The translations under genes were made by a program, and so were the position numbers. Under the pieces are notes generated by a model that worked only from the letters and a program-made list of their open reading frames with translations, made no database searches and was not told the DNA's origin. Positions 250 through 60,594 of a stretch of DNA of 64,000 bases are shown here, piece after piece. Each line of letters begins with the position of its first letter. Position 1 is the stretch's first letter. The stretch lies in sequence record OQ427096.1. One strand, written 5' to 3'.

Positions 250-343
250 CCCGTTGTATCCCCAGACGCTACGAACGTCTACAAAGGTAACTGGAGTGGT
301 GTCAAAAGCACTGATGCAGGTTCGAATCCTGTCGACGGGTCCA
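250..343 (+). tRNA. Atypical D-armless tRNA-Arg(ACG)-like RNA with expanded variable region
   Basis: Acceptor CCCGTTG/CGACGGG+TCCA, anticodon arm AGACG-CTACGAA-CGTCT, T-arm GCAGG-TTCGAAT-CCTGT; no D-arm. Confidence 0.7.
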
Positions 344-348
344 AACAG

Positions 349-434
349 TTCTCGGACTTAAACCGAGTGGTGGAGGATAAACTGAGAAATCAGTGAATCC
401 CTTGACGAGATGGAGTCATTAACTCGATCGAGAA
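349..434 (+). ncRNA. Unidentified structured RNA
   Basis: Terminal TTCTCG/CGAGAA pairing; hairpins CTCGG/CCGAG, GGAT..CTGA-GAAA-TCAG..ATCC, TGAC/GTCA; lies between tRNAs. Confidence 0.45.
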
Positions 435-438
435 TTTT

Positions 439-513
439 GGGCTGCTCGTATAATGAGTATTACACCTGCCTTGCACGCAGGGAATCGGAGTTTGATTCTC
501 CGGCGGTCCACCA
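439..513 (+). tRNA. tRNA-Ala(TGC)
   Basis: G3.U70 pair, loop CT-TGC-AC, CCA. Confidence 0.93.
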
Positions 514-519
514 AAACTT

Positions 520-595
520 GGGGCCTTAGCTCAGATGGGAGAGCAGGTGCTTTGCAAGCATCAGGTCATCGGTTCGATCCCGATAGGCTCCACCA
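520..595 (+). tRNA. tRNA-Ala(TGC), second copy
   Basis: GGGGCCT/AGGCTCC, loop TT-TGC-AA, CCA. Confidence 0.95.
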
Positions 596-606
596 AGTTT
601 AGATAT

Positions 607-691
607 GCCCTGTTGGTGGAATTGGTAGACACGCATCCTTGAGGTGGATGTGCTGAAAGGCGTGAGGGTTCGAGTCCCTTGCAGGGTACCA
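607..691 (+). tRNA. tRNA-Leu(GAG)
   Basis: Loop TT-GAG-GT, long V arm, A73, CCA. Confidence 0.93.
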
Positions 692-705
692 AACAAGACT
701 GTTCA

Positions 706-838
706 ATCAGTCGAACGAGTTGGAAGGTCGGGTTCGAATCCCGAAGTGATGACGTCCGGATTAGGTCATCATTTGGTGTAGTGGGCAGCACGCCGATACA
801 TTAAAAGGTTGCGCAGAAGTGTGCTTCATTTAGACTGT
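706..838 (+). ncRNA. YrlA-like Y RNA (circularly permuted tRNA-like domain)
   Basis: GTCGAACG motif (710-717), T-arm TCGGG-TTCGAAT-CCCGA (728-744), loop-closed acceptor-like stem (745-753/765-773), D-arm GTGT-AGTGGGCA-GCAC (776-791), CAGTC/GACTG terminal helix. Confidence 0.7.
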
Positions 839-840
839 GA

Positions 841-1005
841 ACACAGTCAGGCAAGTCGATCAAAAGACGCGCCGACAAGCCCGAAGCGAGTTCTTCGGCT
901 AAGAAGGAAAGACATCGTTTCCTACTTGTAACGACAAGTCCTTAGAGGATGAAGTCTCCGTTAGTCGGACGCCTGAGAGTGGCGAAAAGGATTCTTCGGT
1001 ATTTC
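841..1005 (+). ncRNA. Unidentified multi-hairpin RNA
   Basis: Non-coding; hairpins AGGAAA/TTTCCT, ACTTGT/ACAAGT, GTC.CCG/CGGAC, GCC/GGC. Confidence 0.4.
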
Positions 1006-1079
1006 GGGTTGCAAGCATTAAGGTGATGCAGGAGGCTTTTAACCTTCAGAACAGGGATCGTTACCCTGGCGACCCACCA
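1006..1079 (+). tRNA. tRNA-Lys(TTT)
   Basis: Loop CT-TTT-AA, variant T-loop ATCGTTA, CCA. Confidence 0.88.
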
Positions 1080-1087
1080 AGTTTTAA

Positions 1088-1163
1088 GCCCCGTTGGCTC
1101 AATTGGCAGAGCAGCTGTTTTGTAATCAGCAGGTTGGGAGTTCGAGTCTCTCACGGGGCACCA
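1088..1163 (+). tRNA. tRNA-Thr(TGT)
   Basis: Cloverleaf, loop TT-TGT-AA, CCA. Confidence 0.93.
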
Positions 1164-1171
1164 AGTTTTAA

Positions 1172-1245
1172 GCGGGTATGGTATAGTGGTTGTGCCCTAG
1201 CCTTCCAAGCTAGAGAGACGAGTTCGATCCTCGTTACCCGCTCCA
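1172..1245 (+). tRNA. tRNA-Gly(TCC)
   Basis: GCGGGTA/TACCCGC, loop CT-TCC-AA, U73. Confidence 0.95.
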
Positions 1246-1256
1246 AGTTTTACGAT

Positions 1257-1334
1257 GCATCTGTCTGCTAATTGGAATAGGCAACGATCCTTTCAAGTTC
1301 GGGAATGCGGGTTCGAGTCCCGTCAGATGCTCCA
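1257..1334 (+). tRNA. tRNA-Glu(TTC), atypical (U73, T.T mismatch in anticodon stem)
   Basis: Loop CT-TTC-AA, GCATCTG/CAGATGC, CCA. Confidence 0.8.
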
Positions 1335-1340
1335 AGTTTT

Positions 1341-1415
1341 GCTCCACTCGTCTAGTGGCTAGGATGACACCCTTTCAAGGTGTAGAAGAGGGATCGAAAC
1401 CCTCGTGGAGTGCCA
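1341..1415 (+). tRNA. tRNA-Glu(TTC)
   Basis: ACACC-CTTTCAA-GGTGT, G73, CCA. Confidence 0.92.
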
Positions 1416-1421
1416 AATTAT

Positions 1422-1498
1422 GCGTCTGTAGCTCAACAGGATAGAGCATCCGGCTTCTACCCGGATGGCTGAGGGTTCGAGTCCTTCCAGGCGCGCCA
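1422..1498 (+). tRNA. tRNA-Arg(TCT)
   Basis: TCCGG-CTTCTAC-CCGGA, CCA. Confidence 0.95.
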
Positions 1499-1508
1499 AG
1501 TTTCAAAT

Positions 1509-1594
1509 GGATAGGTGGGCGAGTGGTTTATGCCAGCAGACTGTAAATCTGCCGCTTAATTGCATCGTTGGTTCGAATCCAACCCTATCCACCA
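1509..1594 (+). tRNA. tRNA-Tyr(GTA)
   Basis: GCAGA-CTGTAAA-TCTGC, long V arm, A73. Confidence 0.95.
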
Positions 1595-1601
1595 AGTTTA
1601 T

Positions 1602-1692
1602 GTGTCTGCTGTCGGGTTGGAGGACGGCACCGGGCTGTAACCCCGGATCCTCAAAAGGGACGTAGTAGGTTCGAATCCTACCAGGCACACCA
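1602..1692 (+). tRNA. tRNA-Tyr(GTA), divergent second copy
   Basis: CCGGG-CTGTAAC-CCCGG, long V arm, unusual D-arm, CCA. Confidence 0.85.
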
Positions 1693-1700
1693 AGTTATAT

Positions 1701-1776
1701 GGTTCCTTAGCTCAGTTGGTAGAGCAACGCTTTTACAAGGCGAAGGTCGTGGGTTCAAGTCCCTCAGGAACTACCA
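1701..1776 (+). tRNA. tRNA-Val(TAC)
   Basis: Loop TT-TAC-AA, cloverleaf, CCA. Confidence 0.9.
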
Positions 1777-1790
1777 AACGTTGAAACAGG

Positions 1791-1818
1791 TTGTGTAGAA
1801 AACAGCTTGGTATACAAT
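1791..1818 (+). promoter_or_regulatory. Putative sigma70-like promoter for the hammerhead/GOLLD unit
   Basis: TTGTGT-N16-TACAAT just upstream of the ribozyme. Confidence 0.4.
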
Positions 1819-1839
1819 AAGCAACATGAAGCAACGTCC

Positions 1840-1925
1840 AGACCACTGAAGAGTCGCCGGGACGATAAACAAAGGCACGAAACGTCGAGAGGCACAAAAC
1901 ATTAGCCTCGTGAGACGTCTGGTCT
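1840..1925 (+). ncRNA. Type I hammerhead ribozyme
   Basis: Stem I AGACCA/TGGTCT, core CTGAAGA (1846-1852), stem II GT(C)GCC/GGCAC, GAAA (1879-1882), stem III CGTC/GACG, GTC cleavage triplet (cut after 1919). Confidence 0.88.
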
Positions 1926-2760
1926 AGCAACTCAATTGTCGAAAGGCGATTGTTTAGGAATACGGTACAGTGATGTGCCTAATGGATTAAACGCCCACAA
2001 GCGGTCCGCCAGAGATGGTTCCTCTAGAACAAGTCGACATAGTGCAGCCGAAAGGTTGGCGTCTAGTATCCCTAGGCGATATGTGGAGGCTCAGTGAGAC
2101 ACGAGATTCAGGTCCAATGCCGAATGGTGAGGATTTGATCGTTTAGCGACGGTAGTGTTTCGGCTTAGCGGCAACTGACTCCAAGGACATTGAATCGGCA
2201 GGTACGTAGTTCAAGCCTTAGCGGGTAAGGGCGAGTATCAGGTCAGACGGACTAATGTTCGTACTGTATCACTCGGACGTAGGCTTAGCGGCTGAAACGA
2301 GAGGAGGTCGGGTAAGAAGCTGTCGCCCAAAAGGCTATGGACTTACGAACCTGCTCGACCTTAGTGGGCTTTCAACTTTGACGGTTAATCAAAACTACGA
2401 AAAACGCAAAGTCAGGTTCGGTCGTAAGTGAAAGTGGCTTAATCGTTGACACGAAAGTGAATCAACGCAATTTGAGGCTCGCAAGGCTGATGATTGTCTA
2501 TCAGGAAGTGCACCTAAGAGGAAGCCCCTCTGAATGGCTCGCAAGGTCAAGGGAAACGGGAAGGTAGAGTAGCTTACGATGACAGAGGAAACGCCACCTC
2601 TTTAAACTAGGCAGCCATGACGGTTAACAATGATGCATCGAAAGATGGTTGTTGTGGAAAAGTTGGGAAGGGCTCCGCAAGAGCTGATAATCCAAACGAA
2701 TGAATCGTCTCGTCAGACTGTATTCTCAGGTCGACACTTTGTTTCAAGGAGTTGTATTCC
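1920..2760 (+). ncRNA. Giant ornate RNA, GOLLD-like
   Basis: ~840 nt with no credible ORF inside a phage tRNA array; many GNRA-capped hairpins; end pairing CAACTC(1928-1933)/GAGTTG(2749-2754); motifs GAAACGAGAGGAG..CGGGTA, AACTACGAAAAA, CGCAAG, TGTATTCTCAG that I recall from GOLLD-type RNAs. Confidence 0.7.
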
Positions 2761-2800
2761 TCAAACGCTTCAATTGAAGTTTTTGCGAAATGCAATTTTT

Positions 2801-2878
2801 GGTCCCATAGTTTACGATTGGTTAGAACTCCCGCCTCTCAAGCGGAAGAATCGGGTTCGACTCCCGATGGGACTGCCA
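2801..2878 (+). tRNA. tRNA-Glu(CTC)
   Basis: Loop CT-CTC-AA, G73, CCA. Confidence 0.92.
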
Positions 2879-2886
2879 AGTTTTAT

Positions 2887-3090
2887 ACGCGTGTAGCTCA
2901 GTGGCGACGATAAGTTCAAAGACGGTAGGCATACTGTCACGCAGAGCGAGTCGAGGATTGGCGATACGACTGTGACGATACGAAGGTGGAGCTCGAGATC
3001 CTAGCTCCGACAATAACGGTACGGTCAACATTCGAGAGCGCCGGGTAGATAACCCGGAGGTCAGTGGTTCGATTCCATTTTCGCGTACCA
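2887..3090 (+). tRNA. tRNA-Ile(GAT)-like gene with ~130-nt structured insertion in the D-loop
   Basis: D-stem GCTC(2896-2899)/GAGC(3036-3039) separated by insert 2905-3034; CCGGG-TAGATAA-CCCGG; T-arm; ACCA. Confidence 0.75.
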
Positions 3091-3118
3091 TATAAGTAGA
3101 GTAGTACAAAAGTTTTAT

Positions 3119-3195
3119 CCGGGTTTAGCTCAGTCTGGCAGAGCACGCCGTTTGGGGCGGTGAGGTCGTAGGTTCGAACCCTGCAACCCGGACCA
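3119..3195 (+). tRNA. tRNA-Pro(TGG)
   Basis: CGCCG-TTTGGGG-CGGTG, CCA. Confidence 0.95.
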
Positions 3196-3209
3196 ATTAG
3201 AGAAGTGTT

Positions 3210-3449
3210 ATGGAAACTTTAGAAACGAAAGTGACACGTCTAGGCAATGGGCTTTATGGATGCAGGATCATCAGGTCAGCTGACAAGAAGCCAATTGTTG
3301 AATTAAGAGTTGAAAAGTCTCAGATTAGGAATGCTATGTTTGATATGCTCCGAACTCTAGACAAGCTGGGATATGATAGTCCTATGGCACATGCTTCGCG
3401 ACATCGCGGTAAGGCTTGTGTCACAGACTCGAAATATATCTGGCATTGA
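3210..3449 (+). CDS. hypothetical protein
   Basis: 79-aa ORF filling the gap between two tRNAs. Confidence 0.7.
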   Translation: METLETKVTRLGNGLYGCRIIRSADKKPIVELRVEKSQIRNAMFDMLRTLDKLGYDSPMAHASRHRGKACVTDSKYIWH

Positions 3450-3454
3450 TTTAT

Positions 3455-3540
3455 TCTGGACGCGCCTAATGGGGAGGCACCGGGCTGTTAACCCGGCGAT
3501 AGAAATATCCGACACGGTTCGATTCCGTGGTCCAGAGCCA
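3455..3540 (+). tRNA. tRNA-Asn(GTT) with long variable arm
   Basis: CCGGG-CTGTTAA-CCCGG, V-arm GATA-GAAA-TATC, G73, CCA. Confidence 0.8.
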
Positions 3541-3546
3541 AGATAT

Positions 3547-3622
3547 GGATTACAGGCCAACTGGTGTAGGCATGCAGCTGTTAACTGCAGATTGTTGAGT
3601 TCGATTCTCAAGTAGTCCTCCA
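3547..3622 (+). tRNA. tRNA-Asn(GTT), U73
   Basis: TGCAG-CTGTTAA-CTGCA, CCA. Confidence 0.85.
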
Positions 3623-3630
3623 AAACAAAC

Positions 3631-3705
3631 GGTCTATTAGTCTATGGGTTAAGATGCTGGCCTGTCACGCCGGCGTAACGAGTTCGAGCCTCGTATAGAC
3701 CGCCA
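3631..3705 (+). tRNA. tRNA-Asp(GTC)
   Basis: CTGGC-CTGTCAC-GCCGG, G73, CCA. Confidence 0.93.
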
Positions 3706-3712
3706 AACAAAT

Positions 3713-3792
3713 CGGGATAGGGACTGCTAGGTGTGGTCGCCGGACTGTCAATCCGGAGAGTCAGACGGATTCGAATTCCGTTATCCCGACCA
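3713..3792 (+). tRNA. tRNA-Asp(GTC), divergent second copy (A73)
   Basis: CCGGA-CTGTCAA-TCCGG, CGGGATA/TATCCCG, CCA. Confidence 0.82.
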
Positions 3793-3799
3793 AGTCAGT

Positions 3800-3872
3800 G
3801 GCGTCCTCTTCGGAGATAGTGAAGTGAGGTAAAGTACTCAATGCTCACGGAACGAATAATCAGACGCCTCCA
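3800..3872 (+). ncRNA. CCA-terminated non-tRNA hairpin RNA
   Basis: GGCGTC/GACGCC stem then TCCA; internal UUCG hairpin and GTGAG/CTCAC stem. Confidence 0.55.
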
Positions 3873-3885
3873 AAATTGAGAATGA

Positions 3886-3959
3886 TGCGCGGTCGTATAA
3901 CGGCAGTATACTGGGCTCATAACCCGGAGATGGAGGTTCGATTCCTCCCTGCGCTACCA
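3886..3959 (+). tRNA. initiator tRNA-fMet(CAT)
   Basis: 1:72 mismatch, three G-C pairs in anticodon stem, loop CT-CAT-AA. Confidence 0.9.
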
Positions 3960-3984
3960 AATGGTCAGGCTCATGACCTAACTC

Positions 3985-4042
3985 TGTGAGTATGATAAGC
4001 TTTCATGAGGCTGTCGGGACTTAACTGTTCAACTCACAACCA
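3985..4042 (+). ncRNA. CCA-terminated mini RNA
   Basis: 7-bp TGTGAGT/ACTCACA then ACCA; 58 nt. Confidence 0.5.
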
Positions 4043-4048
4043 ATCAAC

Positions 4049-4124
4049 GGGTCCGAAGCTCAAATGGCAGAGCAACTGGTTCTTACCCAGTAGGAAGTCG
4101 GTTCGATCCCGACCGGACCCACCA
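4049..4124 (+). tRNA. tRNA-Lys(CTT)
   Basis: ACTGG-TTCTTAC-CCAGT, CCA. Confidence 0.9.
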
Positions 4125-4130
4125 AACTAT

Positions 4131-4170
4131 GCGCTCGAGCAGCCGAAAGGAAGTAGCCGAGGGCGCACCA
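4131..4170 (+). ncRNA. CCA-terminated minihelix RNA
   Basis: GCGCTC/GGGCGC stem then ACCA, internal CC-GAAA-GG; 40 nt. Confidence 0.5.
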
Positions 4171-4176
4171 AACAAT

Positions 4177-4265
4177 GGACTCGTTCCCGTAGTTGGTCGA
4201 ACGGAGCGGACTCTTAATCCGACGGCGAAAGCCCATCGCAGGTTCGAATCCTGCCGGGTCCACCA
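4177..4265 (+). tRNA. tRNA with CTT (Lys) anticodon on a type II body
   Basis: CGGA-CTCTTAA-TCCG, V-arm GGC-GAAA-GCC, A73, CCA. Confidence 0.8.
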
Positions 4266-4278
4266 AAATGAGATAGAT

Positions 4279-4557
4279 ATGCCGAAGTACAATTTCAAGT
4301 GTAGCGAATGTGAGCACCGCGGTGATGTCTGGACCGGCGATACTGAAAAGGTCGACGTGGACTACAAAGACGTAGAGTGCCCTGGTTGTGGAAAAAAGAC
4401 CTACAACTATGCTCCTTGGGATTCAGGTGCTACATCTCAGTCATGGGGCCATGTGAAGCCTACAACGCTAGGAAGGCAGAAGGCTCCTCAGGATTTTAGA
4501 AACTTCCTGACACAGATTAAGAAGGCACATCCAGGTTCAACAATCCGCGATCATTGA
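4279..4557 (+). CDS. FmdB-like zinc-ribbon protein
   Basis: MPKYNFKCSECEH...CPGCG, two CxxC motifs. Confidence 0.75.
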   Translation: MPKYNFKCSECEHRGDVWTGDTEKVDVDYKDVECPGCGKKTYNYAPWDSGATSQSWGHVKPTTLGRQKAPQDFRNFLTQIKKAHPGSTIRDH

Positions 4558-4573
4558 TCAAAAAGGTGTTGCG

Positions 4574-4783
4574 ATGTACGTGTATCAAACTTATTATGAC
4601 TACACCGAAACATATTGTCATCCGAATCCTGAGCAATGGTCGGAAGAAAGGAAAGTTCTGTGTACTACTCTAGACGAGAGCTTGGCGCAAGAAGTTGCAG
4701 CCAAGCACAACGCTGAGAGCAAGGCACACAGGTGGTATAAAGAATATGCGAGAGTTGAGAAGTTTGAATTGACCTCGCGATAA
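4574..4783 (+). CDS. hypothetical protein
   Basis: ORF with AAGGTG ribosome-binding site. Confidence 0.7.
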   Translation: MYVYQTYYDYTETYCHPNPEQWSEERKVLCTTLDESLAQEVAAKHNAESKAHRWYKEYARVEKFELTSR

Positions 4784-4791
4784 AGAATCGC

Positions 4792-4865
4792 TGTTCAGTA
4801 GCTCAGTTGGTAGAGCGGCTGCCATTTAGGGCGGCAGGTCGTGGGTTCGAGACCCACTTGGACGT
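4792..4865 (+). pseudogene. tRNA-like gene with aberrant anticodon loop and no encoded CCA
   Basis: Canonical D-arm TAGCTCAGTTGGTAGAGC and T-arm; GCTGCC-ATTTAG-GGCGGC gives a 6-nt (or 8-nt) loop. Confidence 0.65.
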
Positions 4866-4944
4866 TAAGCGCTAGGGCGAATTTAAAGTACTCACATACT
4901 AGTCCGAGACAGTATCGCCCGGATCCTATAATTGTCAGCAGGTA

Positions 4945-5424
4945 ATGGTCATGCAGAAGAAAATTGACGTGAAAGCAGTCGAGGCGTTCATGCAGACGCA
5001 GAGCCCTGAGACAAAAGTTTATCTTGGAGCAGACTCCGAGAAGGTAAAAATCAATGGTAAGATGTACGCGGATTACACCGTCGTCATCGTTGTTCACATT
5101 GATGGTTGTAAGGGTTGTAAGGTATTCGCCGAGACAACTCGTGAGGAAGACTACGATAAGGACCCTTCAAAGCCGTTCACTCGGATGATGAAGGAAGCTG
5201 AAAAGGTAGCCGAGCTTCACGATCGTTTCAAGGACACCTTCTACGACTTCGAGGTTAGTATTCACCTCGACATCAACCCGAAGAAGACGGCAGGTTCAAG
5301 TATCGCAATGGAAGCGGCACGTGGTTACGTCAAGGCGATGACCATGGTTGATCCTCACTTGAAGCCTGTAGCATTTGCTGGTTCTTATGCTGCGGATCGC
5401 GCTAAAGAACTTGGTATGTGCTAA
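4945..5424 (+). CDS. RNase H-like YkuK (DUF458) family protein
   Basis: VYLGADS, IHLDIN..GSS, KP.AFAGSYAAD motifs. Confidence 0.8.
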   Translation: MVMQKKIDVKAVEAFMQTQSPETKVYLGADSEKVKINGKMYADYTVVIVVHIDGCKGCKVFAETTREEDYDKDPSKPFTRMMKEAEKVAELHDRFKDTFYDFEVSIHLDINPKKTAGSSIAMEAARGYVKAMTMVDPHLKPVAFAGSYAADRAKELGMC

Positions 5425-5431
5425 GAGATAT

Positions 5432-5517
5432 GCCCCTGTAGGCGAATTGGTATAGCTACTGGCCTTAGAAGCCAGCGCCGAAAGGCATTGACGGTTCGAG
5501 TCCGTCCAGGGGTACCA
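5432..5517 (+). tRNA. tRNA-Leu(TAG)
   Basis: CTGGC-CTTAGAA-GCCAG, long V arm. Confidence 0.95.
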
Positions 5518-5524
5518 AATATGT

Positions 5525-5600
5525 GTCGGAGTAGCTCAGTTGGTAGAGCGGTAGCTTGAAAAGTTACGCGTCGCAGGTTCGATTCCTGTCTCCGATACCA
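5525..5600 (+). tRNA. tRNA-Phe(GAA)
   Basis: GTAGC-TTGAAAA-GTTAC, CCA. Confidence 0.93.
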
Positions 5601-5663
5601 AAACACCGTCACTCAGGTCCCTCGGTGCAAAATAAGGGAATACTCAGGAGAGGAGATTGTAGT

Positions 5664-5849
5664 ATGAAGTTGCCTTCGCGTTTTCAAATCGGTGATAAGG
5701 TTCTCGCTGGTCGTCTTGATGGTGGGAGCAAAGGTGAAGTAATTGGTGTACACTTCAACCGATACAAAGTATCGTATGATGTGGTCGACGAGTTGACCCA
5801 ACGTACAAAGAAGCACCTCAGTGAACGGGTTCATCCTGTCACAGAGTAA
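5664..5849 (+). CDS. hypothetical protein (SH3/KOW-like pattern)
   Basis: AGGAG RBS; FQIGDKV..KGEVIGV. Confidence 0.65.
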   Translation: MKLPSRFQIGDKVLAGRLDGGSKGEVIGVHFNRYKVSYDVVDELTQRTKKHLSERVHPVTE

Positions 5850-5869
5850 ATACAGATATAAGACAATTT

Positions 5870-5944
5870 GCATCGTTAGCTGAGATGGATTAGCGCTTGC
5901 CTGAAGAGCTCGAGAGGTTGGTTCGATACCAACACGATGCACCA
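5870..5944 (+). tRNA. tRNA-Phe(GAA), weak anticodon stem
   Basis: Loop CT-GAA-GA, only ~2-3 stem pairs, acceptor GCATCGT/ACGATGC. Confidence 0.75.
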
Positions 5945-5959
5945 AACAAAGGAACGTGA

Positions 5960-6208
5960 ATGAGCTTTAAGCCGGTTAATACTTTCGTCATCGTAAAGCG
6001 TAGGGAAGAAGATACAACGAGTCAGGGAGGCATCATCATCTCTGGATCAGTTGATCATAACCTCTTCACTGTTGTGGCCAAGAATGATCTTGTGACATTC
6101 GTTGAGCCCGGTGATACGGTAGTAATCAACATTCGCGAAGCAGCTGAAATCGACGATGTACATTACGCAGTTGATGCAAAGCACATCTTCACCAAGGTTT
6201 CTAAGTAA
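5960..6208 (+). CDS. GroES-like co-chaperonin
   Basis: FKPVNTFVIVKRREEDTTSQGGIII..V.PGDTV, GroES mobile-loop pattern. Confidence 0.8.
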   Translation: MSFKPVNTFVIVKRREEDTTSQGGIIISGSVDHNLFTVVAKNDLVTFVEPGDTVVINIREAAEIDDVHYAVDAKHIFTKVSK

Positions 6209-6217
6209 GACAGTTTT

Positions 6218-6294
6218 GCCCAGGTGACGGAATTGGTATACGTACTGTCCTCAGAAGGCAGGTTTTGAGGGTTCGAGTCCCTCTCTGGGTACCA
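6218..6294 (+). tRNA. tRNA-Leu(CAG) with short variable loop
   Basis: CTGTC-CTCAGAA-GGCAG, V loop GTTTT, A73. Confidence 0.88.
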
Positions 6295-6304
6295 AAGTTT
6301 CAGT

Positions 6305-6382
6305 GTTCCACGTGTCGGAATTGGTAGACGAGCCAGACTGTGAATCTGGAGTTTGCGGGTTCGAGCCCCGTCGTGGTCCCCA
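6305..6382 (+). tRNA. tRNA-His(GTG)
   Basis: CCAGA-CTGTGAA-TCTGG, G-1:C73, two mismatches at top of acceptor stem. Confidence 0.85.
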
Positions 6383-6428
6383 AAGTTGATCAGGTGATTC
6401 GCCACCTTAGAGTGCGAAATTGAAATAT

Positions 6429-6503
6429 TGCCTGTTAGCTCAGTGGTAGAGCAATCGCCCGATAAGCGATAGGTCGTCAGTTCGATCCTGACACGGGCAA
6501 CCA
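6429..6503 (+). tRNA. tRNA-Ile(GAT), C33
   Basis: ATCGC-CCGATAA-GCGAT, CCA. Confidence 0.9.
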
Positions 6504-6507
6504 ATAA

Positions 6508-6581
6508 GCCTTCATAGCTCAAAGGTAGAGCACTCGCCCGATAAGCGATAGACCTAGGATCGTTACCTAGTGAAGGCACCA
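6508..6581 (+). tRNA. tRNA-Ile(GAT), C33, second copy
   Basis: TCGC-CCGATAA-GCGA, T-loop ATCGTTA. Confidence 0.88.
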
Positions 6582-16236: not shown

Positions 16237-16237
16237 T

Positions 16238-54224: not shown

Positions 54225-55340
54225 ATGTATCTGCAGTTGTCAGACTTTGACCACCTCCGCGAAAACCCGAACGTGCGTTTCCGCGAAGAGAACGTCGCCG
54301 GTAAAGATGTCGTCATCATCTCTTACATGCTTTCCAGCGACGAGCTGTGGAAGCTGCCGCTCGGTGTGGAATGCCGTGGCATCACCTTCGATGCCCAAAC
54401 GGGTAAGCTGATCTCGCTGCCGTTCGAGAAGTTCTTCAATGTCAACGAGAAGGCGCACACCCAGGCTCACATCATCCGTGACTACAAGGTGCAGGCTGTC
54501 CTGGACAAGCGCGACGGTTCGATGATCACGCCGATCTGGGCTGATGGTCGTATCTATCTCAAGACCAAGAAGACCTTCACCTCCGACGTCGCAGTGGCAG
54601 CTCAGCGCCCCCTTTCTGTCGAGCTGGAACGCTTCTGTGAAGCCATGCTCGAACTGAACTTCACTCCGATCTTCGAGTTCACCGATCCTGACTGCAAGAT
54701 CGTCCTCGACTACGGTCATGACTCTCAGCTTGTGCTGCTGGCGATGCGCGATATGATCGACGGCTCCTATGTCTCGTACAAGGACCTGGACCAGATTTCC
54801 AAGGCTTGGGGTGTGCAACTGGTTGGCGGCTATAACCATGACTATACCGTTGATGGCTACCTCGAGCTCGCAAAGACTGCTGAGGGCATCGAAGGCTGGG
54901 TCATCTACACCGATGAAGGTCGCTACAAGGTCAAGACAAAGTGGTACTGTGATCGCCATCACCTGATCGATATTCGTGAGCGCGATATCGCTGCCCTGGT
55001 ACTCGAAGAGAAGCTGGACGACCTGATCCCGAACCTGCTCGCAGGTGATGCGGATATGGAAGCCATCCGCGAGATCGAGCGCCGTGTGACCGATGGCATT
55101 TCGCACATCATGGAAACCGTTGCCTTCCTTGGTGTCCATGCAAGTGGTATCGACCTGGGTAAGGATCGTGCCGATTGGGTCAACGCCAACTGTGGCAAGC
55201 TGTCGAAGTTTGTCCATCGTGCAGCTCGTGGTGTGGAGAACTCTGACGAGTCCTTCAAGGAGTTCTATCGTCAGCACTATCTCAGCACCTTCTCACTCCG
55301 GTCAATCGGCAACCCCAATTTCCGCGACGAGGAAGAATAA
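54225..55340 (+). CDS. rnlA: RNA ligase 1 (T4 RnlA-like)
   Basis: ECRGITF, PFEKFFN, motif I KRDGSMI, FEF, EGWV, KVKTKWY. Confidence 0.93.
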   Translation: MYLQLSDFDHLRENPNVRFREENVAGKDVVIISYMLSSDELWKLPLGVECRGITFDAQTGKLISLPFEKFFNVNEKAHTQAHIIRDYKVQAVLDKRDGSMITPIWADGRIYLKTKKTFTSDVAVAAQRPLSVELERFCEAMLELNFTPIFEFTDPDCKIVLDYGHDSQLVLLAMRDMIDGSYVSYKDLDQISKAWGVQLVGGYNHDYTVDGYLELAKTAEGIEGWVIYTDEGRYKVKTKWYCDRHHLIDIRERDIAALVLEEKLDDLIPNLLAGDADMEAIREIERRVTDGISHIMETVAFLGVHASGIDLGKDRADWVNANCGKLSKFVHRAARGVENSDESFKEFYRQHYLSTFSLRSIGNPNFRDEEE

Positions 55341-57416: not shown

Positions 57417-57733
57417 TTGGTCGTCTCTTCAATCGACAGAAGCCTGTCATCTTCGAGGCTCCTCCGCCGCAGGGTGATATGTATGAGCTCTGGCTCAAGG
57501 TCGGCAAGGTGCATATCAAGTCCGCATCCTTCTGTCATCGAGTTGCGGTGCAGTTGATGAACCTGCGCGGTGGGAAGTGGGTGGCCCAGCCCGACTACCA
57601 CGGCGACTTGGTGGGAGTCTACACCTTCACCCAGGACTTCATCTTCATCCGCGTTCGTGATGATGGGTATGGTAACGAGTTGCAGCGGATTGAGATCAGC
57701 ATCACTGAAGGCTCCTACCTCCGGATTCCCTGA
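57413..57733 (+). CDS. hypothetical protein
   Basis: ATGA overlap. Confidence 0.65.
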   Translation: MIGRLFNRQKPVIFEAPPPQGDMYELWLKVGKVHIKSASFCHRVAVQLMNLRGGKWVAQPDYHGDLVGVYTFTQDFIFIRVRDDGYGNELQRIEISITEGSYLRIP

Positions 57734-57827
57734 AAACTGGCCTACACATCGTCTTAACGAGTGGTCTATATAATGCAGATGCCGGCAGAAACTTTCTAGT
57801 CCGGCACTAACCAAAAGGATCATCGTC

Positions 57828-58139
57828 ATGTCTACGCTCAACTCCCCCGCTCACACCTACGCCAGGCCCTCCGGTGCTGTCAACTCTGTCCGAAAGATGC
57901 ATGTGGAGCGCGGCGGTGAGGAAGTCCGCTTCGTCATCGGTAAGGACCCTGCAACAGGTCGCTACTTTCCGGTCTTCATCGACCGCATCAAGCAGGTGAG
58001 TGATCAGGAGATCATGGCCAACCCGAGCGCCAACCAAACGGGTCGCGCAAAGAAGCGAGCCAGCGCTCGAAAGGCTCCTGCGAAGAAGGCAGCCAAGAAG
58101 GCGACCAAGCGGACAACGCGCAAGAACACGTTGCACTGA
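57828..58139 (+). CDS. hypothetical protein with histone-like K/A-rich tail
   Basis: KKRASARKAPAKKAAKKATKR. Confidence 0.7.
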   Translation: MSTLNSPAHTYARPSGAVNSVRKMHVERGGEEVRFVIGKDPATGRYFPVFIDRIKQVSDQEIMANPSANQTGRAKKRASARKAPAKKAAKKATKRTTRKNTLH

Positions 58140-58153
58140 AACGAAAGTTTCTG

Positions 58154-58188
58154 AGAGAAGCTGCCCGTAAGAAGGCAGCTTTTCTTTT
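58154..58188 (+). terminator. Intrinsic terminator
   Basis: AAGCTGCC-CGTAAGAA-GGCAGCTT + T run. Confidence 0.8.
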
Positions 58189-58199
58189 GGCTGTTTTTC

Positions 58200-58640
58200 G
58201 TGACCACACAAGAAAGGAATTATCTATACAATTTGTATATCGACAAACGGAGCACCAATGTGAAGTTGTTCAAGACCGCCATCGCCAAGCTCAACGCCAT
58301 CCCGAGAAAGAACATCGAACGTGTCGCGGCAGTTGTCGTGTTCACTGCGGTGACCGGCGGGCTGGCACATTCCTTCATCAATGATGGTGGGATGGAATTC
58401 TTCAAGCCGAAGACCGTCGCGGTGGCTCAGGCTGATACCTATGCCAAGCCGATCGTCGAAGAGGGTTTCTTCCTGACCAAGACGACCTGGCCTGATTACA
58501 AGGACACGGTGTCGGCTGAGCAGTATGCGAACCAAACGCAGTTCGACCGCACCCACCTGGGTCCGTGCAGCAAGGACAAGCCGTGCGAGAAGCCGAAGAG
58601 CTATCTCGACTATAACCTCCCGGACTACCTGACCAAGTAA
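58200..58640 (+). CDS. hypothetical membrane-anchored protein
   Basis: One TM segment; true start may be ~58257. Confidence 0.6.
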   Translation: MTTQERNYLYNLYIDKRSTNVKLFKTAIAKLNAIPRKNIERVAAVVVFTAVTGGLAHSFINDGGMEFFKPKTVAVAQADTYAKPIVEEGFFLTKTTWPDYKDTVSAEQYANQTQFDRTHLGPCSKDKPCEKPKSYLDYNLPDYLTK

Positions 58641-58650
58641 GGAAACGAGC

Positions 58651-59043
58651 ATGAACCCGATCGTTGAAAACGCATACACCTATCGCATCCAGAACGATTC
58701 TGAGACTGTTGTCTGGAAGTCCCAAGCTCGTGATGACCGAAAGGTAGAAGCCATCAAGTCTTTCCGTGCCGCCACCGGCGCAGGTCTCCTGGAAGCCAAG
58801 CAGGTAGTAGAGCACTACAAATCTCTCTACGATCAGAAGATGCGCGAGGTTGGTTCAAAGCCTGCCAGTGGCAATCGTATCGTCAACCTGCGCCTTGGCA
58901 CCCGTCTCGTGGTCGCCGAAGATGTGCCTGGGTTCTTCAAGGTAAAGGAGATCACCGAGCGCGACCTCGGCATTGTGGACGAGTATGATCTCCTTCAGTT
59001 CATTGCCGATACGGCAGCGCGCCTGGGCGGACCGGTGGCGTAA
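58651..59043 (+). CDS. protein with ribosomal L7/L12 C-terminal-like domain
   Basis: KVEAIKSFRAATGAGLLEAKQVVE. Confidence 0.75.
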   Translation: MNPIVENAYTYRIQNDSETVVWKSQARDDRKVEAIKSFRAATGAGLLEAKQVVEHYKSLYDQKMREVGSKPASGNRIVNLRLGTRLVVAEDVPGFFKVKEITERDLGIVDEYDLLQFIADTAARLGGPVA

Positions 59044-59240
59044 TGCCTTTCGTACTTCAACACCGCCGACAGGCCAGCCCTCTACCCATGGTAAAAGAAT
59101 GGTCTGAGGTCGCCGGCTCCTATTCCGAAACCATGGAAGGTGTCAAGGCTGAGATGGAATGGTGGGACCGTTATAATGAGCAATACCGACTGACGGATTG
59201 GGAATTCAAAGTGGTGCAGGTGAAGGCGAGGAAGGGATGA
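59043..59240 (+). CDS. hypothetical protein
   Basis: TAATG coupling. Confidence 0.55.
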   Translation: MPFVLQHRRQASPLPMVKEWSEVAGSYSETMEGVKAEMEWWDRYNEQYRLTDWEFKVVQVKARKG

Positions 59241-59521
59241 TGGAAAACGATTTCGGCATTGACTATCACCTCAACATCATGAACAACGGGCGCCCAACGC
59301 CTTCGGACTATCTCCCTCCTCGCCCAGAGAAATGCCTCTGGAAGATCATCTCGTTCGATGGCTACTATGCCACCTACCGCACCGAATGCGGACAGCTGGA
59401 AGATATCCGTGCTGAGGAATGCGTTGGCATGCCGATGATCCCCGAGCCTCAAGGCAAGTACTGCCATCATTGCGGTGGCAGGCTGCATGTGAACTCGTCG
59501 TTCAAAAGGAAGACACACTGA
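59237..59521 (+). CDS. hypothetical protein, Cys-rich
   Basis: C.W...Y.TECG...YC.HCGG. Confidence 0.65.
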   Translation: MMENDFGIDYHLNIMNNGRPTPSDYLPPRPEKCLWKIISFDGYYATYRTECGQLEDIRAEECVGMPMIPEPQGKYCHHCGGRLHVNSSFKRKTH

Positions 59522-60594
59522 TGAAGTTCTACATCGTGGGTGGCGCAGTTCGCGATCATCTGATGGGCAAGGTCCCGAAAGACATTGACTACGTTGTGGT
59601 TGGTGCCACTCCTGAAGACATGCTGGACATGGGACTGAAACAGGTCGGCGCCGACTTCCCTGTCTTCATCGACGAGGCTGGCACGGAGTTCGCTCTGGCT
59701 CGTACCGAACGAAAGACAGGCGTTGGTTACAATGGTTTCACCACTGACCACAGCACATCGGTGACGTTGGAAGAGGATCTGTCTCGCCGTGACCTGACCA
59801 TCAACGCTATGGCAATGGTGAAAGACAGCCAGGCAATCATCGACCCGTTCAACGGCGTTGCGGACATCGAAGACAAGATCCTGCGCCATGTCTCTCTGGC
59901 CTTTGTGGAGGATCCTGTGCGTGTGCTTCGCATCGCTCGTTTCCGTGCAAGGCTGGGCGAGGACTGGACCATCGCACCTGATACCATGGTACTGCTGAAA
60001 GAGATGGTGCGCCGAGGCGACTTGGCTCATCTGACGCGTGAGCGTGTGCTGTTGGAAATGGAAAAGGCATTCGGTGAGCCGTACCCCGATATCTTCTTCT
60101 CGACTTTGAAAGAGATCGGAGCCCTAGACGTGGTCTTCCCTCACTTGTTCATGATCGACAAGCTGGACTATCAAGAGATAAGAAAGGCTGCCGGCACATC
60201 GCCGGCGTTTGTCTACTCCGTTGTCTCTCTGATCATGCCTGAGACGAGTGCTGATTACTTCGGCGAACGGCTGCGCGTCTCCAACGAGTGGCGACAGATG
60301 GCTGTCATGTATCGCGCCATGATGAATAGCCGAATGGATTCCAATCAGGTAGACATCCTGTACAAGATGGATGCCTACAGGAAACATCATGTGTGGGATG
60401 CTCTGCTGAGAGAACTGGTCAAGACTGGAAGGAGTCGTGAGAGGTTCTACAACGATCTGTTCGTTGTCTGGTGTTCAACCAGTCGAATGAGCTTCACCGA
60501 ATTGACCGAATGGCAGCGTGATAACCTCAAGGGTCCGGAGATTGCTGAGGCCATCAAACAGCTGCGCAAGAAGGTGATCAATGAAACTCGGTGA
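59521..60594 (+). CDS. cca: tRNA nucleotidyltransferase (CCA-adding, class II)
   Basis: VGGAVRD.L....KDID, VGADFPVF, EFALARTERK, EDLSRRDLTINAMA, EDPVRVLR.ARF. Confidence 0.95.
   Translation: MKFYIVGGAVRDHLMGKVPKDIDYVVVGATPEDMLDMGLKQVGADFPVFIDEAGTEFALARTERKTGVGYNGFTTDHSTSVTLEEDLSRRDLTINAMAMVKDSQAIIDPFNGVADIEDKILRHVSLAFVEDPVRVLRIARFRARLGEDWTIAPDTMVLLKEMVRRGDLAHLTRERVLLEMEKAFGEPYPDIFFSTLKEIGALDVVFPHLFMIDKLDYQEIRKAAGTSPAFVYSVVSLIMPETSADYFGERLRVSNEWRQMAVMYRAMMNSRMDSNQVDILYKMDAYRKHHVWDALLRELVKTGRSRERFYNDLFVVWCSTSRMSFTELTEWQRDNLKGPEIAEAIKQLRKKVINETR

Follow-up and report, generated by a model that had tools for sequence, protein, structure and literature searches.

Organization of the tRNA array

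The window analyzed here, a 64,000-nucleotide stretch of DNA corresponding to bases 136059-200058 of OQ427096.1, belongs to Xanthomonas phage X1, a T4-like phage with a published genome of 200 kb. It opens within a tRNA array that starts just upstream and is closed by a strong terminator at 11286-11317. The features assigned in the array are listed below, with the evidence in parentheses.

1-11317, + strand: tRNA array of ~40 tRNA-type genes, GOLLD, tRNA-like RNAs and small ORFs (ARAGORN, Rfam)
250-343, + strand: non-canonical tRNA-Arg(ACG), long form with an extra hairpin (family alignment, RNAalifold, covariance model)
1841-1924, + strand: candidate type I hammerhead, predicted cleavage 1919/1920 (descriptor, Rfam)
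1920-2732, + strand: GOLLD RNA with a putative variable 5' domain (1920-2302) and a conserved 3' domain (2303-2732) (Rfam RF02032)
2887-3090, + strand: tRNA-Ile(GAU)-like RNA with a ~130-nt D-loop insert, anticodon loop UAGAUAA (A33) and A73-CCA end (sequence reading)
3800-4170, + strand: three NCCA-ended hairpins, 3800-3872, 3985-4042 and 4131-4170 (folds)
4792-4865, + strand: tRNA-like RNA with a 6-nt anticodon loop, CCA not encoded (ARAGORN "tRNA-???", Rfam tRNA 41.5 bits, fold)
4951-5424, + strand: RNase H-like protein (PF04308/DUF458) inside the array (Pfam 3.4e-13)
7254-7364, + strand: tRNA-like RNA, ~37-nt variable arm, C73-CCA end (Rfam tRNA 31.7 bits, fold)
10167-10255, + strand: tRNA-Ser(CGA), T loop with A54, missed by ARAGORN (acceptor-plus-NCCA scan, fold)
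10779-10865, + strand: tRNA-Ser(GGA), missed by ARAGORN (acceptor-plus-NCCA scan, fold)

The total of ~40 tRNA-type genes agrees with the ~38 conventional tRNAs counted in the preliminary description. ARAGORN detected 36 of them, and the others are a cut tRNA-Trp (1-69), the two tRNA-Ser genes and the tRNA-Arg at 250-343. An encoded N73-CCA end, earlier ascribed to all conventional tRNAs, was found in 35 of the 36 ARAGORN genes, the exception being the tRNA-like RNA at 4792-4865. Together, the array tRNAs cover all 20 amino acids, and the annotated X1 tRNAs outside the window are Val, Leu, and Met only. Small ORFs are interspersed among the tRNAs, and internal promoters and terminators are no more frequent in the array than expected by chance. 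Of 42 loci with a non-canonical tRNA-Arg of the ACG or UCG type, 19 have homologs of the RNase H-like protein within their tRNA arrays.

Twin genes with one aberrant copy were identified for Ala, Glu, Tyr, Asn, Asp, Lys, Phe, and Ile. The twins share an anticodon and have different bodies, with anticodon-loop differences at positions 32, 37, and 38; these aberrant copies, together with the large tRNA-like RNAs at 2887-3090 and 7254-7364, bear out the earlier mention of rebuilt tRNAs. X1-like Lys(CUU) and Asn(GUU) tRNAs with long variable arms recur in other arrays, and the arm stems covary. The tRNAs for Lys, Asn, Thr, and Tyr are known nuclease targets. In its large array and variant Lys, Asn, Thr, and Tyr copies, X1 resembles T5 facing PARIS and retrons as well as the mycobacteriophage arrays (PMC10264068, PMC11555353, PMC12409363), but its differences are body-wide, including the long Lys/Asn variable arms, A54 T loops, and the rebuilt D arm of the tRNA-Arg.

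A non-canonical tRNA-Arg

The RNA at 250-343 is unannotated and was missed by both ARAGORN and the Rfam tRNA model. Its elements are an acceptor stem of 7 bp, an anticodon arm with the loop CUACGAA, a T arm and a U73-CCA end. The normal D arm is missing, and a D-like stem of 3 bp surrounds both the anticodon hairpin and a AAAGGUAA loop. The GG motif of the D loop is retained in the family, shifted to a position 3' of the anticodon hairpin.

Among the fetched loci, 49 copies of this family were identified, none of which is detected by ARAGORN in bacterial mode. The family model (R1) scored these copies at 83-105 bits, compared to at most 41 bits for ordinary tRNAs, and the covariance-model score of the X1 RNA was 90.5 bits. 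In the family alignment (A2), 98.2% of cells are paired and 15 of 24 pairs show double changes, with a covariation of 0.603 versus 0.161 in shuffled and ≤0.082 in slid alignments. RNAalifold independently recovered the acceptor, anticodon, and T stems, 12 of 17 pairs being compensatory; of the three pairs in the D-like stem, only one covaries. A search pattern with the anticodon loop left free returned ACG or UCG exclusively, and weaker model matches built on the same plan have GCG or UCU, so that the anticodon is an arginine anticodon in every family member. The discriminator base may be U, A, or G; if ArgRS reads it, such variability is unusual.

CGN accounts for 86% of the arginine codons in the window, and the RNA at 250-343 is the sole X1 tRNA for these codons. 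Copy-bearing arrays spanning 18 amino-acid types contain no tRNA-Arg besides the non-canonical form, and a canonical Arg-ACG is also present in just two of the 49 copy-bearing loci. Phage DLP_6 has both, and the non-canonical form is therefore not always the sole decoder. On the alignment evidence, 250-343 is assigned to a class of arginine tRNAs that is widespread, has gone unannotated, and is characterized by a rebuilt D arm, and, judged from its sequence, it behaves as a working tRNA-Arg and not as a decoy. The class resembles mitochondrial tRNAs lacking the D arm (PMC7609411) and allo-tRNAs (PMC5389517) in retaining acceptor, anticodon, and T arms around a D arm that departs from the cloverleaf, but differs from them in being viral, arginine-specific, and in having the GG motif moved 3' of the anticodon hairpin. 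No mention of such an arginine class was found in the reviews covered by a limited look at the literature.

GOLLD and a candidate hammerhead

The preliminary report of a GOLLD-like RNA was confirmed by a match of 2303-2732 to the full RF02032 model (179.2 bits, gathering score 150). The length of ~820 nt agrees with the published GOLLD size of >800 nt (10.1101/2024.12.08.627333). GOLLD is known from phage and mycobacterial tRNA islands (10.1101/2024.12.08.627333; PMC6582537), and the X1 copy likewise has array tRNAs on both sides; however, it is without a nested tRNA, such as occurs in two related arrays. In BUDD, a sister phage ~92-97% identical to X1, GOLLD is 97-98% identical to that of X1.

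A further difference from known GOLLD RNAs is the candidate hammerhead located just 5' of it, at the predicted 5' end. It contains a full catalytic core (CUGAAGA..GAAA..GUC), a stem I of 6 bp, and 5 or more base pairs of stem III; stem II, however, is bulged, and the Rfam Hammerhead_1 score of 18.6 bits is below the gathering score of 34. The descriptor gave 0 matches in 1000 shuffles, after having been loosened to fit 1841-1924. The core is the same in BUDD, and a candidate at the 5' side of GOLLD was seen only in these two phages. In core nucleotides, three-stem layout, and intergenic position, with a cleavage that would process a long transcript, the candidate is similar to type I hammerheads of phage transcripts (PMC3088659), from which it differs by the bulged stem II, long loops and sub-threshold score. 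A limited look at the literature, in which this link was not searched for directly, gave no report of a hammerhead at the 5' end of GOLLD.

Other tRNA-like RNAs and NCCA hairpins

Comparison with BUDD showed that the tRNA-like RNAs at 4792-4865 and 7254-7364 are 100% and 99% identical, respectively; the former is placed between two ORFs, and the flanking CDS are only 75-84% identical. The anticodon stem of 2887-3090 shows a compensatory change from G:C to A:U. The three NCCA hairpins, previously described as minihelices, do exist between the tRNA-Asp, Met, and Lys genes, but all three are absent or replaced in BUDD, and a scan for 7-bp stems followed by NCCA found the array no richer than the remaining window (3.75 vs. 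3.06 per kb). Most likely, they are remains of tRNAs or spacer sequences that evolve fast. A tRNA 3'-half remnant (692-804) is present in X1 and not in BUDD, which in turn has inserts not present in X1. The Y-like RNA of the preliminary description was not recovered, the top YrlA score being 25 bits, with 69 needed, over ordinary tRNAs. Some of the elements at 347-438, 805-1005, 6582-6780, and 6940-7253, as well as the tRNA-like RNA with the 6-nt loop, may have non-tRNA roles. As tRNA-like RNAs encoded among the tRNA genes of a T4-type phage, the X1 elements recall the stable species 1 and 2 RNAs of T4 (rnaC and rnaD), of which rnaC has termini that pair and a canonical T arm; unlike these, with which they share no sequence similarity, the X1 elements are mostly NCCA-ended, and 250-343 has a clear decoding anticodon.

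RNA-repair enzymes

Seven proteins with possible functions in RNA repair were considered downstream of the array.

13614-14390, + strand: metallophosphoesterase (Pfam PF00149, 1e-14)
14925-15920, + strand: Pol-beta-superfamily (family-X fold) nucleotidyltransferase (PHROG 24943, 6.6e-55)
17405-17908, + strand: second metallophosphoesterase (PHROG 547, 1e-40; Pfam weak, 0.0024)
24344-25231, + strand: Pnkp, 5'-kinase and HAD-type 3'-phosphatase (Pfam AAA_33 and HAD_PNKP, 5e-42; DxDGT motif)
39760-40926, + strand: Rnl5/DraRnl-type RNA ligase, N-terminal OB and nucleotidyltransferase domains (Pfam PF21189 and PF09414)
54225-55340, + strand: Rnl1, T4 RnlA/gp63-type (Pfam PF09511, 6e-28; TIGR02308, 2e-40; Moby synteny)
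59521-60594, + strand: class II tRNA nucleotidyltransferase, CCA-adding type (Pfam PolyA_pol head and RNA-binding domain; PHROG 2244, 7e-105)

Pnkp, Rnl1, the CCA-adding enzyme, the second nucleotidyltransferase, and the two metallophosphoesterases had all been named from the sequence, and these assignments stand. The protein encoded at 14925-15920 contains a GS...DxD motif, and its AlphaFold2 model (mean pLDDT 95) gave Pol lambda and Pol beta as top Foldseek matches (E 1e-6, TM 0.40). The second metallophosphoesterase is 51% identical to a metallophosphatase of Stenotrophomonas phage Moby. In the CCA-adding enzyme the HD domain was not detected, and NCBIfam matches (E. coli-type) were limited to residues 1-210. 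A separate HAD-like protein, also proposed earlier, was not found, the DxDGT motif occurring only in the phosphatase domain of Pnkp. The ligase at 39760-40926 is an RNA ligase as described, but of the Rnl5/DraRnl type, since it has an N-terminal OB domain, matches the Naegleria ligase NgrRnl in the PDB (1e-54), and scores above the cut-off for TIGR02306 (158.9 bits, cut-off 151.15); identity with T4 Rnl2 was rejected on the same domain layout and matches.

According to Amitsur et al. (1987), as cited in PMC10264068, T4 Pnkp and Rnl1 repair tRNA-Lys cut by PrrC. X1 is similar in having a bifunctional Pnkp and an RnlA-type ligase at separate places in a T4-like genome, as in T4. It differs in that Rnl1 adjoins tail-fibre and lysis genes, its relatives being annotated as tail-fibre attachment catalysts, and in that the second ligase is Rnl5-type. 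Homologs in phage records numbered 452 for the CCA enzyme, 2222 for Pnkp, and 1621 for Rnl1.

In Moby, Pnkp, the phosphoesterase, the 14925-type nucleotidyltransferase, DUF932, NADAR, QueD, and Rnl1 are found in X1 gene order, and the array is plain, with 23 tRNAs and without non-canonical RNAs. DLP_6 has the non-canonical tRNA-Arg, a hammerhead, and the RNase H-like and GroES genes of the array; of Pnkp, both ligases (Rnl1 and Rnl5-like), the CCA enzyme, and the 14925 nucleotidyltransferase, no homolog was found in it. The expected co-occurrence of non-canonical RNAs and repair genes thus fails, because DLP_6 has these RNAs without the enzymes and Moby the enzymes without these RNAs.

Interpretation of the locus

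The preliminary description took the region for an integrated counter-defence locus, with non-canonical RNAs as decoys titrating tRNA nucleases and with Pnkp, the ligases, and the CCA enzyme for the repair of cut tRNAs. The tRNAs for Lys, Asn, Tyr, Asp, Glu, and Gln are favourite nuclease targets, and all six are among the duplicated tRNAs. Every enzyme class is present, the RNAs at 3800-4170, 4792-4865, and 2887-3090 have no obvious decoding role, and defences cutting anticodon loops or CCA tails exist (PMC12851939, PMC12409363, PMC11541572). Replacement and repair are plausible by homology, but a coherent system with decoys is unsupported: co-occurrence fails in both Moby and DLP_6, the enzyme genes are dispersed over 45 kb amid unrelated genes, and the minihelices are not conserved in BUDD. 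In addition, arginine anticodons of four isoacceptor types, in an RNA that fills the only Arg-CGN slot, fit decoding better than titration. We consider such a decoy system quite improbable.

Much of the turnover between X1 and BUDD (the 692-804 remnant, the BUDD-only inserts and the minihelices) would also be expected if the non-canonical elements were for the most part tRNA duplicates in decay and leftover spacer, some of them retained solely as RNase P/RNase Z "punctuation" that releases small mRNAs and GOLLD from one long transcript. The interleaving of small ORFs with tRNAs, internal promoters and terminators at chance level, and the CCA-less 4792-4865 between two ORFs are consistent with this explanation, which is nevertheless unlikely, as it leaves unexplained the covariation, arginine-only anticodons, and many lineages of the tRNA-Arg family, the compensatory changes at 2887-3090, and the complete conservation of 4792-4865 beside diverged CDS. 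That the array merely tunes tRNA supply to phage codon usage and host shut-off, its oddities being neutral drift with no link to defence, is very improbable. All 20 amino acids are covered and such arrays are common in large phages (PMC13384950, PMC6409571), but same-anticodon twins with different bodies add no codon coverage, and the recurrence of the same unusual designs with covariation in distant arrays argues for selection on design.

The interpretation that we favor, and regard as probable on balance, is a T4-like phage tRNA array with working divergent tRNAs followed by backbone genes of the lineage, and not a decoy system. Most of the region is ordinary for a T4-like phage. The long, probably polycistronic array would supply tRNAs for all 20 amino acids, several as a standard and a structurally divergent copy. 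The divergent copies would be working tRNAs of recurrent phage-specific designs, the clearest case being 250-343 as the putative only decoder of the main arginine codons of the phage. GOLLD would be transcribed together with the tRNAs; a hammerhead cut at 1919/1920 would probably release its 5' end, and RNase P acting on the following tRNA would probably release its 3' side. The T4-like backbone would have brought with it Pnkp, Rnl1, both phosphoesterases, and the nucleotidyltransferase of Pol-beta fold, and the Rnl5-type ligase and the CCA enzyme would be additions common in large phages; jointly, these enzymes could mend broken RNA ends by healing and sealing and could restore CCA tails. Phage tRNAs bypass tRNA nucleases (PMC10264068, PMC11555353, PMC12409363). 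The analysis shows identities, covarying structures, distribution, synteny, and codon need; an escape of the divergent tRNAs from the tRNA nucleases of the host, a repair of tRNAs by these enzymes in infected cells, and cleavage by the hammerhead are inferred. By analogy with T4 and T5, replacement of host tRNAs combined with healing, sealing, and CCA repair is plausible in X1.

The tRNA array of phage X1

Over its first 12 kb the window matches Xanthomonas phage X1 (OQ427096.1, 136059-148058), a T4-like phage of X. campestris 8004 with a genome of 200 kb, at 100% identity, and the entire window corresponds to 136059-200058. The nearest relative is the sister phage BUDD (91.8% identity across 87% of this stretch). 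The description of X1 from 2026 reports 34 tRNAs for 18 amino acids and mentions neither GOLLD, Pnkp, the CCA enzyme, ribozymes nor counter-defence (PMC13384950). With ARAGORN, we identified 36 tRNA genes between 78 and 11279, most of them also found by Rfam. Additional tRNAs were sought by scanning for 7-bp acceptor stems followed by NCCA, combined with folding, which recovered tRNA-like RNAs at 250-343 and 7254-7364 as well as the two serine tRNAs listed here together with the end of the array:

10167-10255, tRNA-Ser(CGA), from the acceptor/NCCA scan and folding
10779-10865, tRNA-Ser(GGA), from the acceptor/NCCA scan and folding
11286-11317, 13-bp terminator at the array end

The tRNA set of X1 covers all 20 amino acids, compared with the published 18, and real tRNA genes in phage arrays are overlooked by standard tRNA finders. 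N73-CCA is encoded in 35 of the 36 ARAGORN genes (the exception being 4792-4865), usually followed by an AGTTT-type spacer, which bears out the proposal in the preliminary description that CCA addition is unnecessary for tRNA maturation. Promoter-like and terminator-like sites within the array are no commoner than in shuffled sequence, which fits long precursor transcripts. Identity to BUDD is 95-98% in the non-coding stretches and 75-96% in the interleaved ORFs, and several small elements occur in X1 or BUDD, not in both. A search of 1-12000 with Rfam at permissive thresholds gave no named family besides tRNA and GOLLD; plastid and snoRNA matches were rejected as antisense tRNA or noise. Related viral arrays contain GOLLD with a nested tRNA, the manA RNA motif and permuted tmRNAs (L017 10818-11280 and L008 1177-1643; L013, L015, L030, L034 and L036; L004, L006 and L042, all fetched viral loci), and several structured RNAs gather in phage tRNA islands.

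A tRNA-Arg with a rebuilt D arm

Neither ARAGORN nor Rfam detected the unannotated element at 250-343. Its acceptor stem is perfect, its T arm is canonical and it carries U73-CCA; one hairpin bears the loop CUACGAA, which is the anticodon loop of tRNA-Arg(ACG). As in canonical tRNAs, the acceptor stem is 7 bp with N73-CCA, the T stem is 5 bp with a TTCRANY-type loop, and the anticodon stem is 5 bp with a 7-nt loop. A D arm in cloverleaf order (positions 9-26) was not found. Just 5 nt lead from U8-A9 to the anticodon stem, and the loop that contains GG comes after the anticodon hairpin, on its 3' side. In place of the usual D arm, N10-C-C is paired with a G-G-(A)-N' segment located 3' of that hairpin, and the N10:N' pair covaries (UG 7, AU 6, UA 5). 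Between the two D-like strands lies a conserved AAAGGUAA loop, which presumably provides the contact that G18-G19 make with the T loop.

The alignment of 21 distinct sequences has 98.2% of cells paired and 15 of the 24 pairs changed on both sides; in the acceptor, T and anticodon helices all cells (100%) are paired and 12 pairs show double changes. The covariation score was 0.603, against 0.161 for shuffled alignments and at most 0.082 for slid partners, and RNAalifold independently found the acceptor, anticodon and T stems. None of 22 members was called by ARAGORN in bacterial mode, mitochondrial mode gave one partial call, and the Rfam tRNA model did not match.

Distribution and probable decoding role of the non-canonical tRNA-Arg

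Counterparts of 250-343 in BUDD and in the Stenotrophomonas phage DLP_6 carry compensatory changes. Scanning IMG/VR with the exact pattern gave 39 loci, two of them false, and a second pattern with the anticodon loop left free gave 34 loci, in which the new members were ACG or UCG. When the 739 kb of fetched sequence was searched with R1, the covariance model of the family built from the alignment, 49 matches scored 83-105 bits and ordinary tRNAs reached at most 41 bits; intermediate matches (42-69 bits) share the layout and carry GCG or UCU anticodons, also arginine. Among 185,579 species genomes the pattern occurred only six times, always in alphaproteobacterial MAGs. No description of the class was found in the reviews consulted.

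In X1, 250-343 is the sole tRNA for CGN codons, the only canonical tRNA-Arg being UCU; the annotated X1 tRNAs outside the window are three (Val, Leu and Met). CGN codons make up 86% of the arginine codons in the window genes. A canonical Arg-ACG is also present in just two of the 49 loci bearing the non-canonical form, and arrays covering 18 amino-acid types have no other tRNA-Arg. The arginine-only anticodons and the position of 250-343 as sole CGN decoder in X1 lend indirect support to its use in decoding. Based on these sequence patterns we conclude that 250-343 probably represents a working, arginine-specific class of non-canonical tRNA and not a decoy.

A PF04308/DUF458 (YkuK-type) RNase H-like protein, encoded at 4951-5424 in the window, is recurrent within phage tRNA arrays. 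The gene, seen besides the window in L004, L005, L009, L013-L015, L017, L024, L026, L030, L031, L033, L034, L036, L042, L045, L046 and L051, is present in 19 of 42 loci having an ACG- or UCG-type non-canonical tRNA-Arg. It lies 250-750 nt downstream of the tRNA on the same strand in 12 of these, all from one related lineage, and a constant adjacency of the two was rejected since it holds for that lineage only. Very small zinc-ribbon ORFs also lie among the tRNAs, namely a 92-aa Zn_ribbon_8 protein in X1 (4279-4557) and, in BUDD only, a 27-codon CxxC...CxxC ORF (L003 1690-1775) inserted between tRNA-Pro and the non-canonical tRNA-Arg.

Other divergent tRNAs

Same-anticodon twins were observed in X1 for Ala, Glu, Tyr, Asn, Asp, Lys-CUU, Phe and Ile. 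In each pair a standard copy is accompanied by one with a long variable arm, an A54 T loop or changes in the D or T loop, and further differences between the two fall at loop positions 32, 37 and 38. Long variable arms recur, in distant phage arrays, on tRNAs that ordinarily have short ones: the Lys-CUU form is present in X1, BUDD, L004, L044 and L049, and the Asn-GUU form in X1, DLP_6 and L032. Their long variable arms have covarying stems capped by GNRA-type loops. The divergent tRNAs were located as follows:

Window 3455-3540 and 4177-4265; L004 927-1018; L044 2744-2833; L049 1114-1200; L005 (DLP_6) 3375-3460; L032 1610-1692: class-II-like Lys(CUU)/Asn(GUU) tRNAs
Window 2887-3090: Ile(GAU)-like tRNA with a D-loop insert of ~130 nt and A33 in the anticodon loop

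Long arms were also noted on Thr, Ile(UAU), Met and Cys tRNAs of phage arrays, and the long-armed copy in DLP_6 carries a pseudo-tRNA annotation. The PARIS nuclease targets Lys, Asn and Thr, and T5 tRNAs bypass PARIS (PMC12409363); the overlap between these targets and the identities of the long-armed tRNAs is suggestive, nothing more. The anticodon stem of 2887-3090 shows a compensatory change from G:C to A:U in BUDD, and a search of the fetched arrays gave no relatives beyond X1 and BUDD for either this RNA or 7254-7364.

In six tRNAs (1006-1079, 1341-1415, 6508-6581, 6866-6939, 10167-10255 and 10262-10348) the T loop opens with A where T is usual (ATCGNNA); two of the six have ATCGTTA with T at position 58, as if T54:A58 had been swapped to A54:T58. 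The tRNA-His at 6305-6382, 100% identical in BUDD, keeps G-1 and C73 and has acceptor mismatches at 1:72 (U-C) and 2:71 (U-U). The tRNA-like RNA at 4792-4865 has an anticodon loop of six nucleotides (AUUUAG) and three G-U acceptor pairs, and lacks CCA. It is 100% conserved in BUDD between ORFs that are 75-84% identical, and may be a processing signal.

GOLLD and hammerhead candidates

The GOLLD-like RNA proposed in the preliminary description was recovered by RF02032, through its conserved 3' domain, at 2303-2732 over model positions 1-416 of 416 (179.2 bits against a threshold of 150). According to the literature, GOLLD sits in phage tRNA islands, exceeds 800 nt and has a variable 5' half. 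A hammerhead-like element lies 5' of it:

1841-1924, candidate type I hammerhead with full core; stem I is 6 bp and stem III at least 5 bp

The core comprises C3-U4-G5-A6-N7-G8-A9, G12-A13-A14, A15.1:U16.1 and H17, and is identical in BUDD, a phage too close to X1 for covariation testing. Core and stems I and III agree with a hammerhead, whereas stem II is irregular (2 bp, bulge, 3 bp) and the end-to-end alignment to Rfam Hammerhead_1 scored 18.6 bits, below the gathering score of 34. A first descriptor with contiguous stem II missed the site; the bulge-tolerant version, tuned after the fact, gave no match in 1000 array shuffles and two in the 480 kb of arrays, where 0.3 were expected. Based on its sequence, 1841-1924 is a credible hammerhead candidate with predicted self-cleavage, and the GOLLD RNA released by a cut at 1919/1920 would be ~820 nt long.

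In DLP_6, we observed an unannotated textbook type I hammerhead directly upstream of tRNA-His (L005 8357-8490; KU682439.2 112512-112645), which scored 19.6 bits with Rfam HH9, below threshold. Its stem I uses the 5' end of the tRNA-His itself, and the predicted cut after C8417 would leave tRNA-His preceded by exactly G-1; the ribozyme, and not RNase P, may thus define the unusual 5' terminus of tRNA-His.

Spacers, minihelices and the Y-like RNA

The remaining non-canonical RNAs of the preliminary description fared less well. A Y-like RNA was not supported, since the best YrlA match (25 bits; the gathering score is 69) overlaps ordinary tRNAs; TROVE, the domain of the Ro/Rsr partner, had no match in the subset of proteins scanned, which included the only unassigned large protein. 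The NCCA-ended minihelices are real as hairpins (3800-3872, 3985-4042 and 4131-4170), but they are neither enriched nor conserved in BUDD, which lacks two of the three and has a different hairpin in place of the third. A generic scan for 7-bp stems with NCCA gave no enrichment over background, and stem-plus-NCCA frequency was dropped as evidence for minihelices. A tRNA 3'-half remnant at 692-804 is present in X1 and absent from BUDD; like the hairpins, it looks like a turnover product.

Non-coding stretches of 90-310 nt separate tRNAs at 347-438, 805-1005, 6582-6780 and 6940-7253, the last with a T-arm-like hairpin at ~7137-7156. They are 95-98% identical in BUDD, except 6582-6780 (68%), and none matched Rfam. 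Thermodynamic folding told little about the large gaps (z-scores of -2.1 for 805-1005, +0.5 for 6582-6780 and 0.0 for 6940-7253). A distant blastn search with all odd spacers against 50,697 phage records returned only X1, BUDD, a piece of GOLLD in XacN1 and the 250-343 element in DLP_6, and local blastn against the 480 kb of fetched arrays gave no relatives of 347-438, 805-1005, 2887-3090, 6582-6780 or 6940-7253.

RNA repair enzymes

Most of the proposed enzymes were confirmed. The Pnk (24344-25231) is a T4-type Pnkp, in which an N-terminal P-loop kinase (AAA_33, residues 5-135) is combined with a C-terminal HAD phosphatase (HAD_PNKP, 153-289, IVDIDGT at 154), and the Rnl1 of RnlA type (54225-55340) matches PF09511 with 98.7 bits against 28.3 and TIGR02308 with 2e-40, under the equivalog cut-off. 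The protein encoded by 39760-40926, described as an Rnl2-type ligase, is an RNA ligase, but of the Rnl5/DraRnl type (TIGR02306, 158.9 against a cut-off of 151.15; NgrRnl 5cot, 1e-54). Rnl2 (T4 RnlB) was ruled out by the domain order, where an N-terminal OB domain (PF21189) precedes the nucleotidyltransferase domain, whereas in Rnl2 the nucleotidyltransferase domain is followed by a specific C-terminal domain. The class II CCA-type enzyme (59521-60594) has a PolyA_pol head (PF01743) and a PF12627 neck/RNA-binding region, both above cut-offs; no C-terminal HD phosphohydrolase domain like that of the E. coli multifunctional enzyme was detectable, the NCBIfam matches end at ~residue 210 and all equivalog scores are under cut-offs. 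For the second nucleotidyltransferase (14925-15920), no Pfam match was found and PDB sequence searches returned noise, so that the assignment needed a fold search, which identified a Pol-beta/family-X catalytic core in the predicted fold (pLDDT 95). Both metallophosphoesterases were verified, and a search for the separate HAD-like protein found none.

Further genes in this region include 41092-41544 and 36139-36645, encoding NADAR-domain and QueD-like proteins syntenic with the YbiA-like and QueD-like genes of the Stenotrophomonas phage Moby; they may relate to 7-deazaguanine chemistry. A QueD gene (71% identity) lies near the array in L004 too. The 238-aa protein encoded by 36660-37376 has no family match and carries a HELAH zinc-metalloprotease-type motif.

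One system or several

The preliminary description joined replacement tRNAs, decoy RNAs and repair enzymes into one counter-defence locus, and expected the odd RNAs to co-occur with pnk, rnl and cca. This expectation failed, as DLP_6 has the RNAs without the enzymes and Moby the enzymes without the RNAs; both are found together only in X1 and BUDD, and the X1 enzyme genes are scattered across 45 kb. X1 and Moby share the order tRNA array, 14925-type nucleotidyltransferase, phosphoesterase, Pnkp, DUF932, thymidylate synthase, NADAR, QueD, cell-wall hydrolase and Rnl1, and the closest relatives of the X1 Pnkp and Rnl1 are in phages of the Moby group. The array of Moby is plain, with 23 tRNAs and no match to the tRNA-Arg model. 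Conversely, the complete genome of the T4-like DLP_6 encodes the non-canonical tRNA-Arg, RNase H-like and GroES genes within the array and a hammerhead; at E <=1e-3 it lacks homologs of Pnkp and Rnl1, and likewise of the Rnl5-type ligase, the CCA enzyme and the 14925 protein. The CCA enzyme has homologs in 452 phage records, most of them from large phages. Together, these contrasts and the spread of the CCA enzyme indicate that the repair genes track the phage backbone or are common add-ons, and that the array contents move independently of them.

By analogy with known phages, tRNA replacement and RNA repair by the X1 locus are plausible, but the decoys are unsupported and no single module is apparent. 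As a whole, the locus is mostly known T4-like equipment in a published genome and not a new defence-evasion module. The parts worth pursuing are the arginine tRNA class and, less so, the candidate hammerhead at the 5' end of GOLLD. The main arginine decoder of X1 appears to belong to a tRNA architecture that is specific to arginine, lacks annotation and recurs in dozens of viral contigs. It is a speculative and rather unlikely extension that this D-arm-rebuilt tRNA, with its anticodon hairpin enclosed by a short D-like stem, is charged and works normally in decoding while being invisible to a host factor recognizing standard tRNA-Arg, such as a nuclease of the colicin D kind or a modification enzyme, and that the X1 hammerhead also frees GOLLD with a 5'-OH that Pnkp could phosphorylate. 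The non-canonical tRNA-Arg bears on how far working tRNA bodies can leave the cloverleaf, and on whether phages reshape tRNA bodies beyond the anticodon loops and so escape tRNA-targeting immunity.
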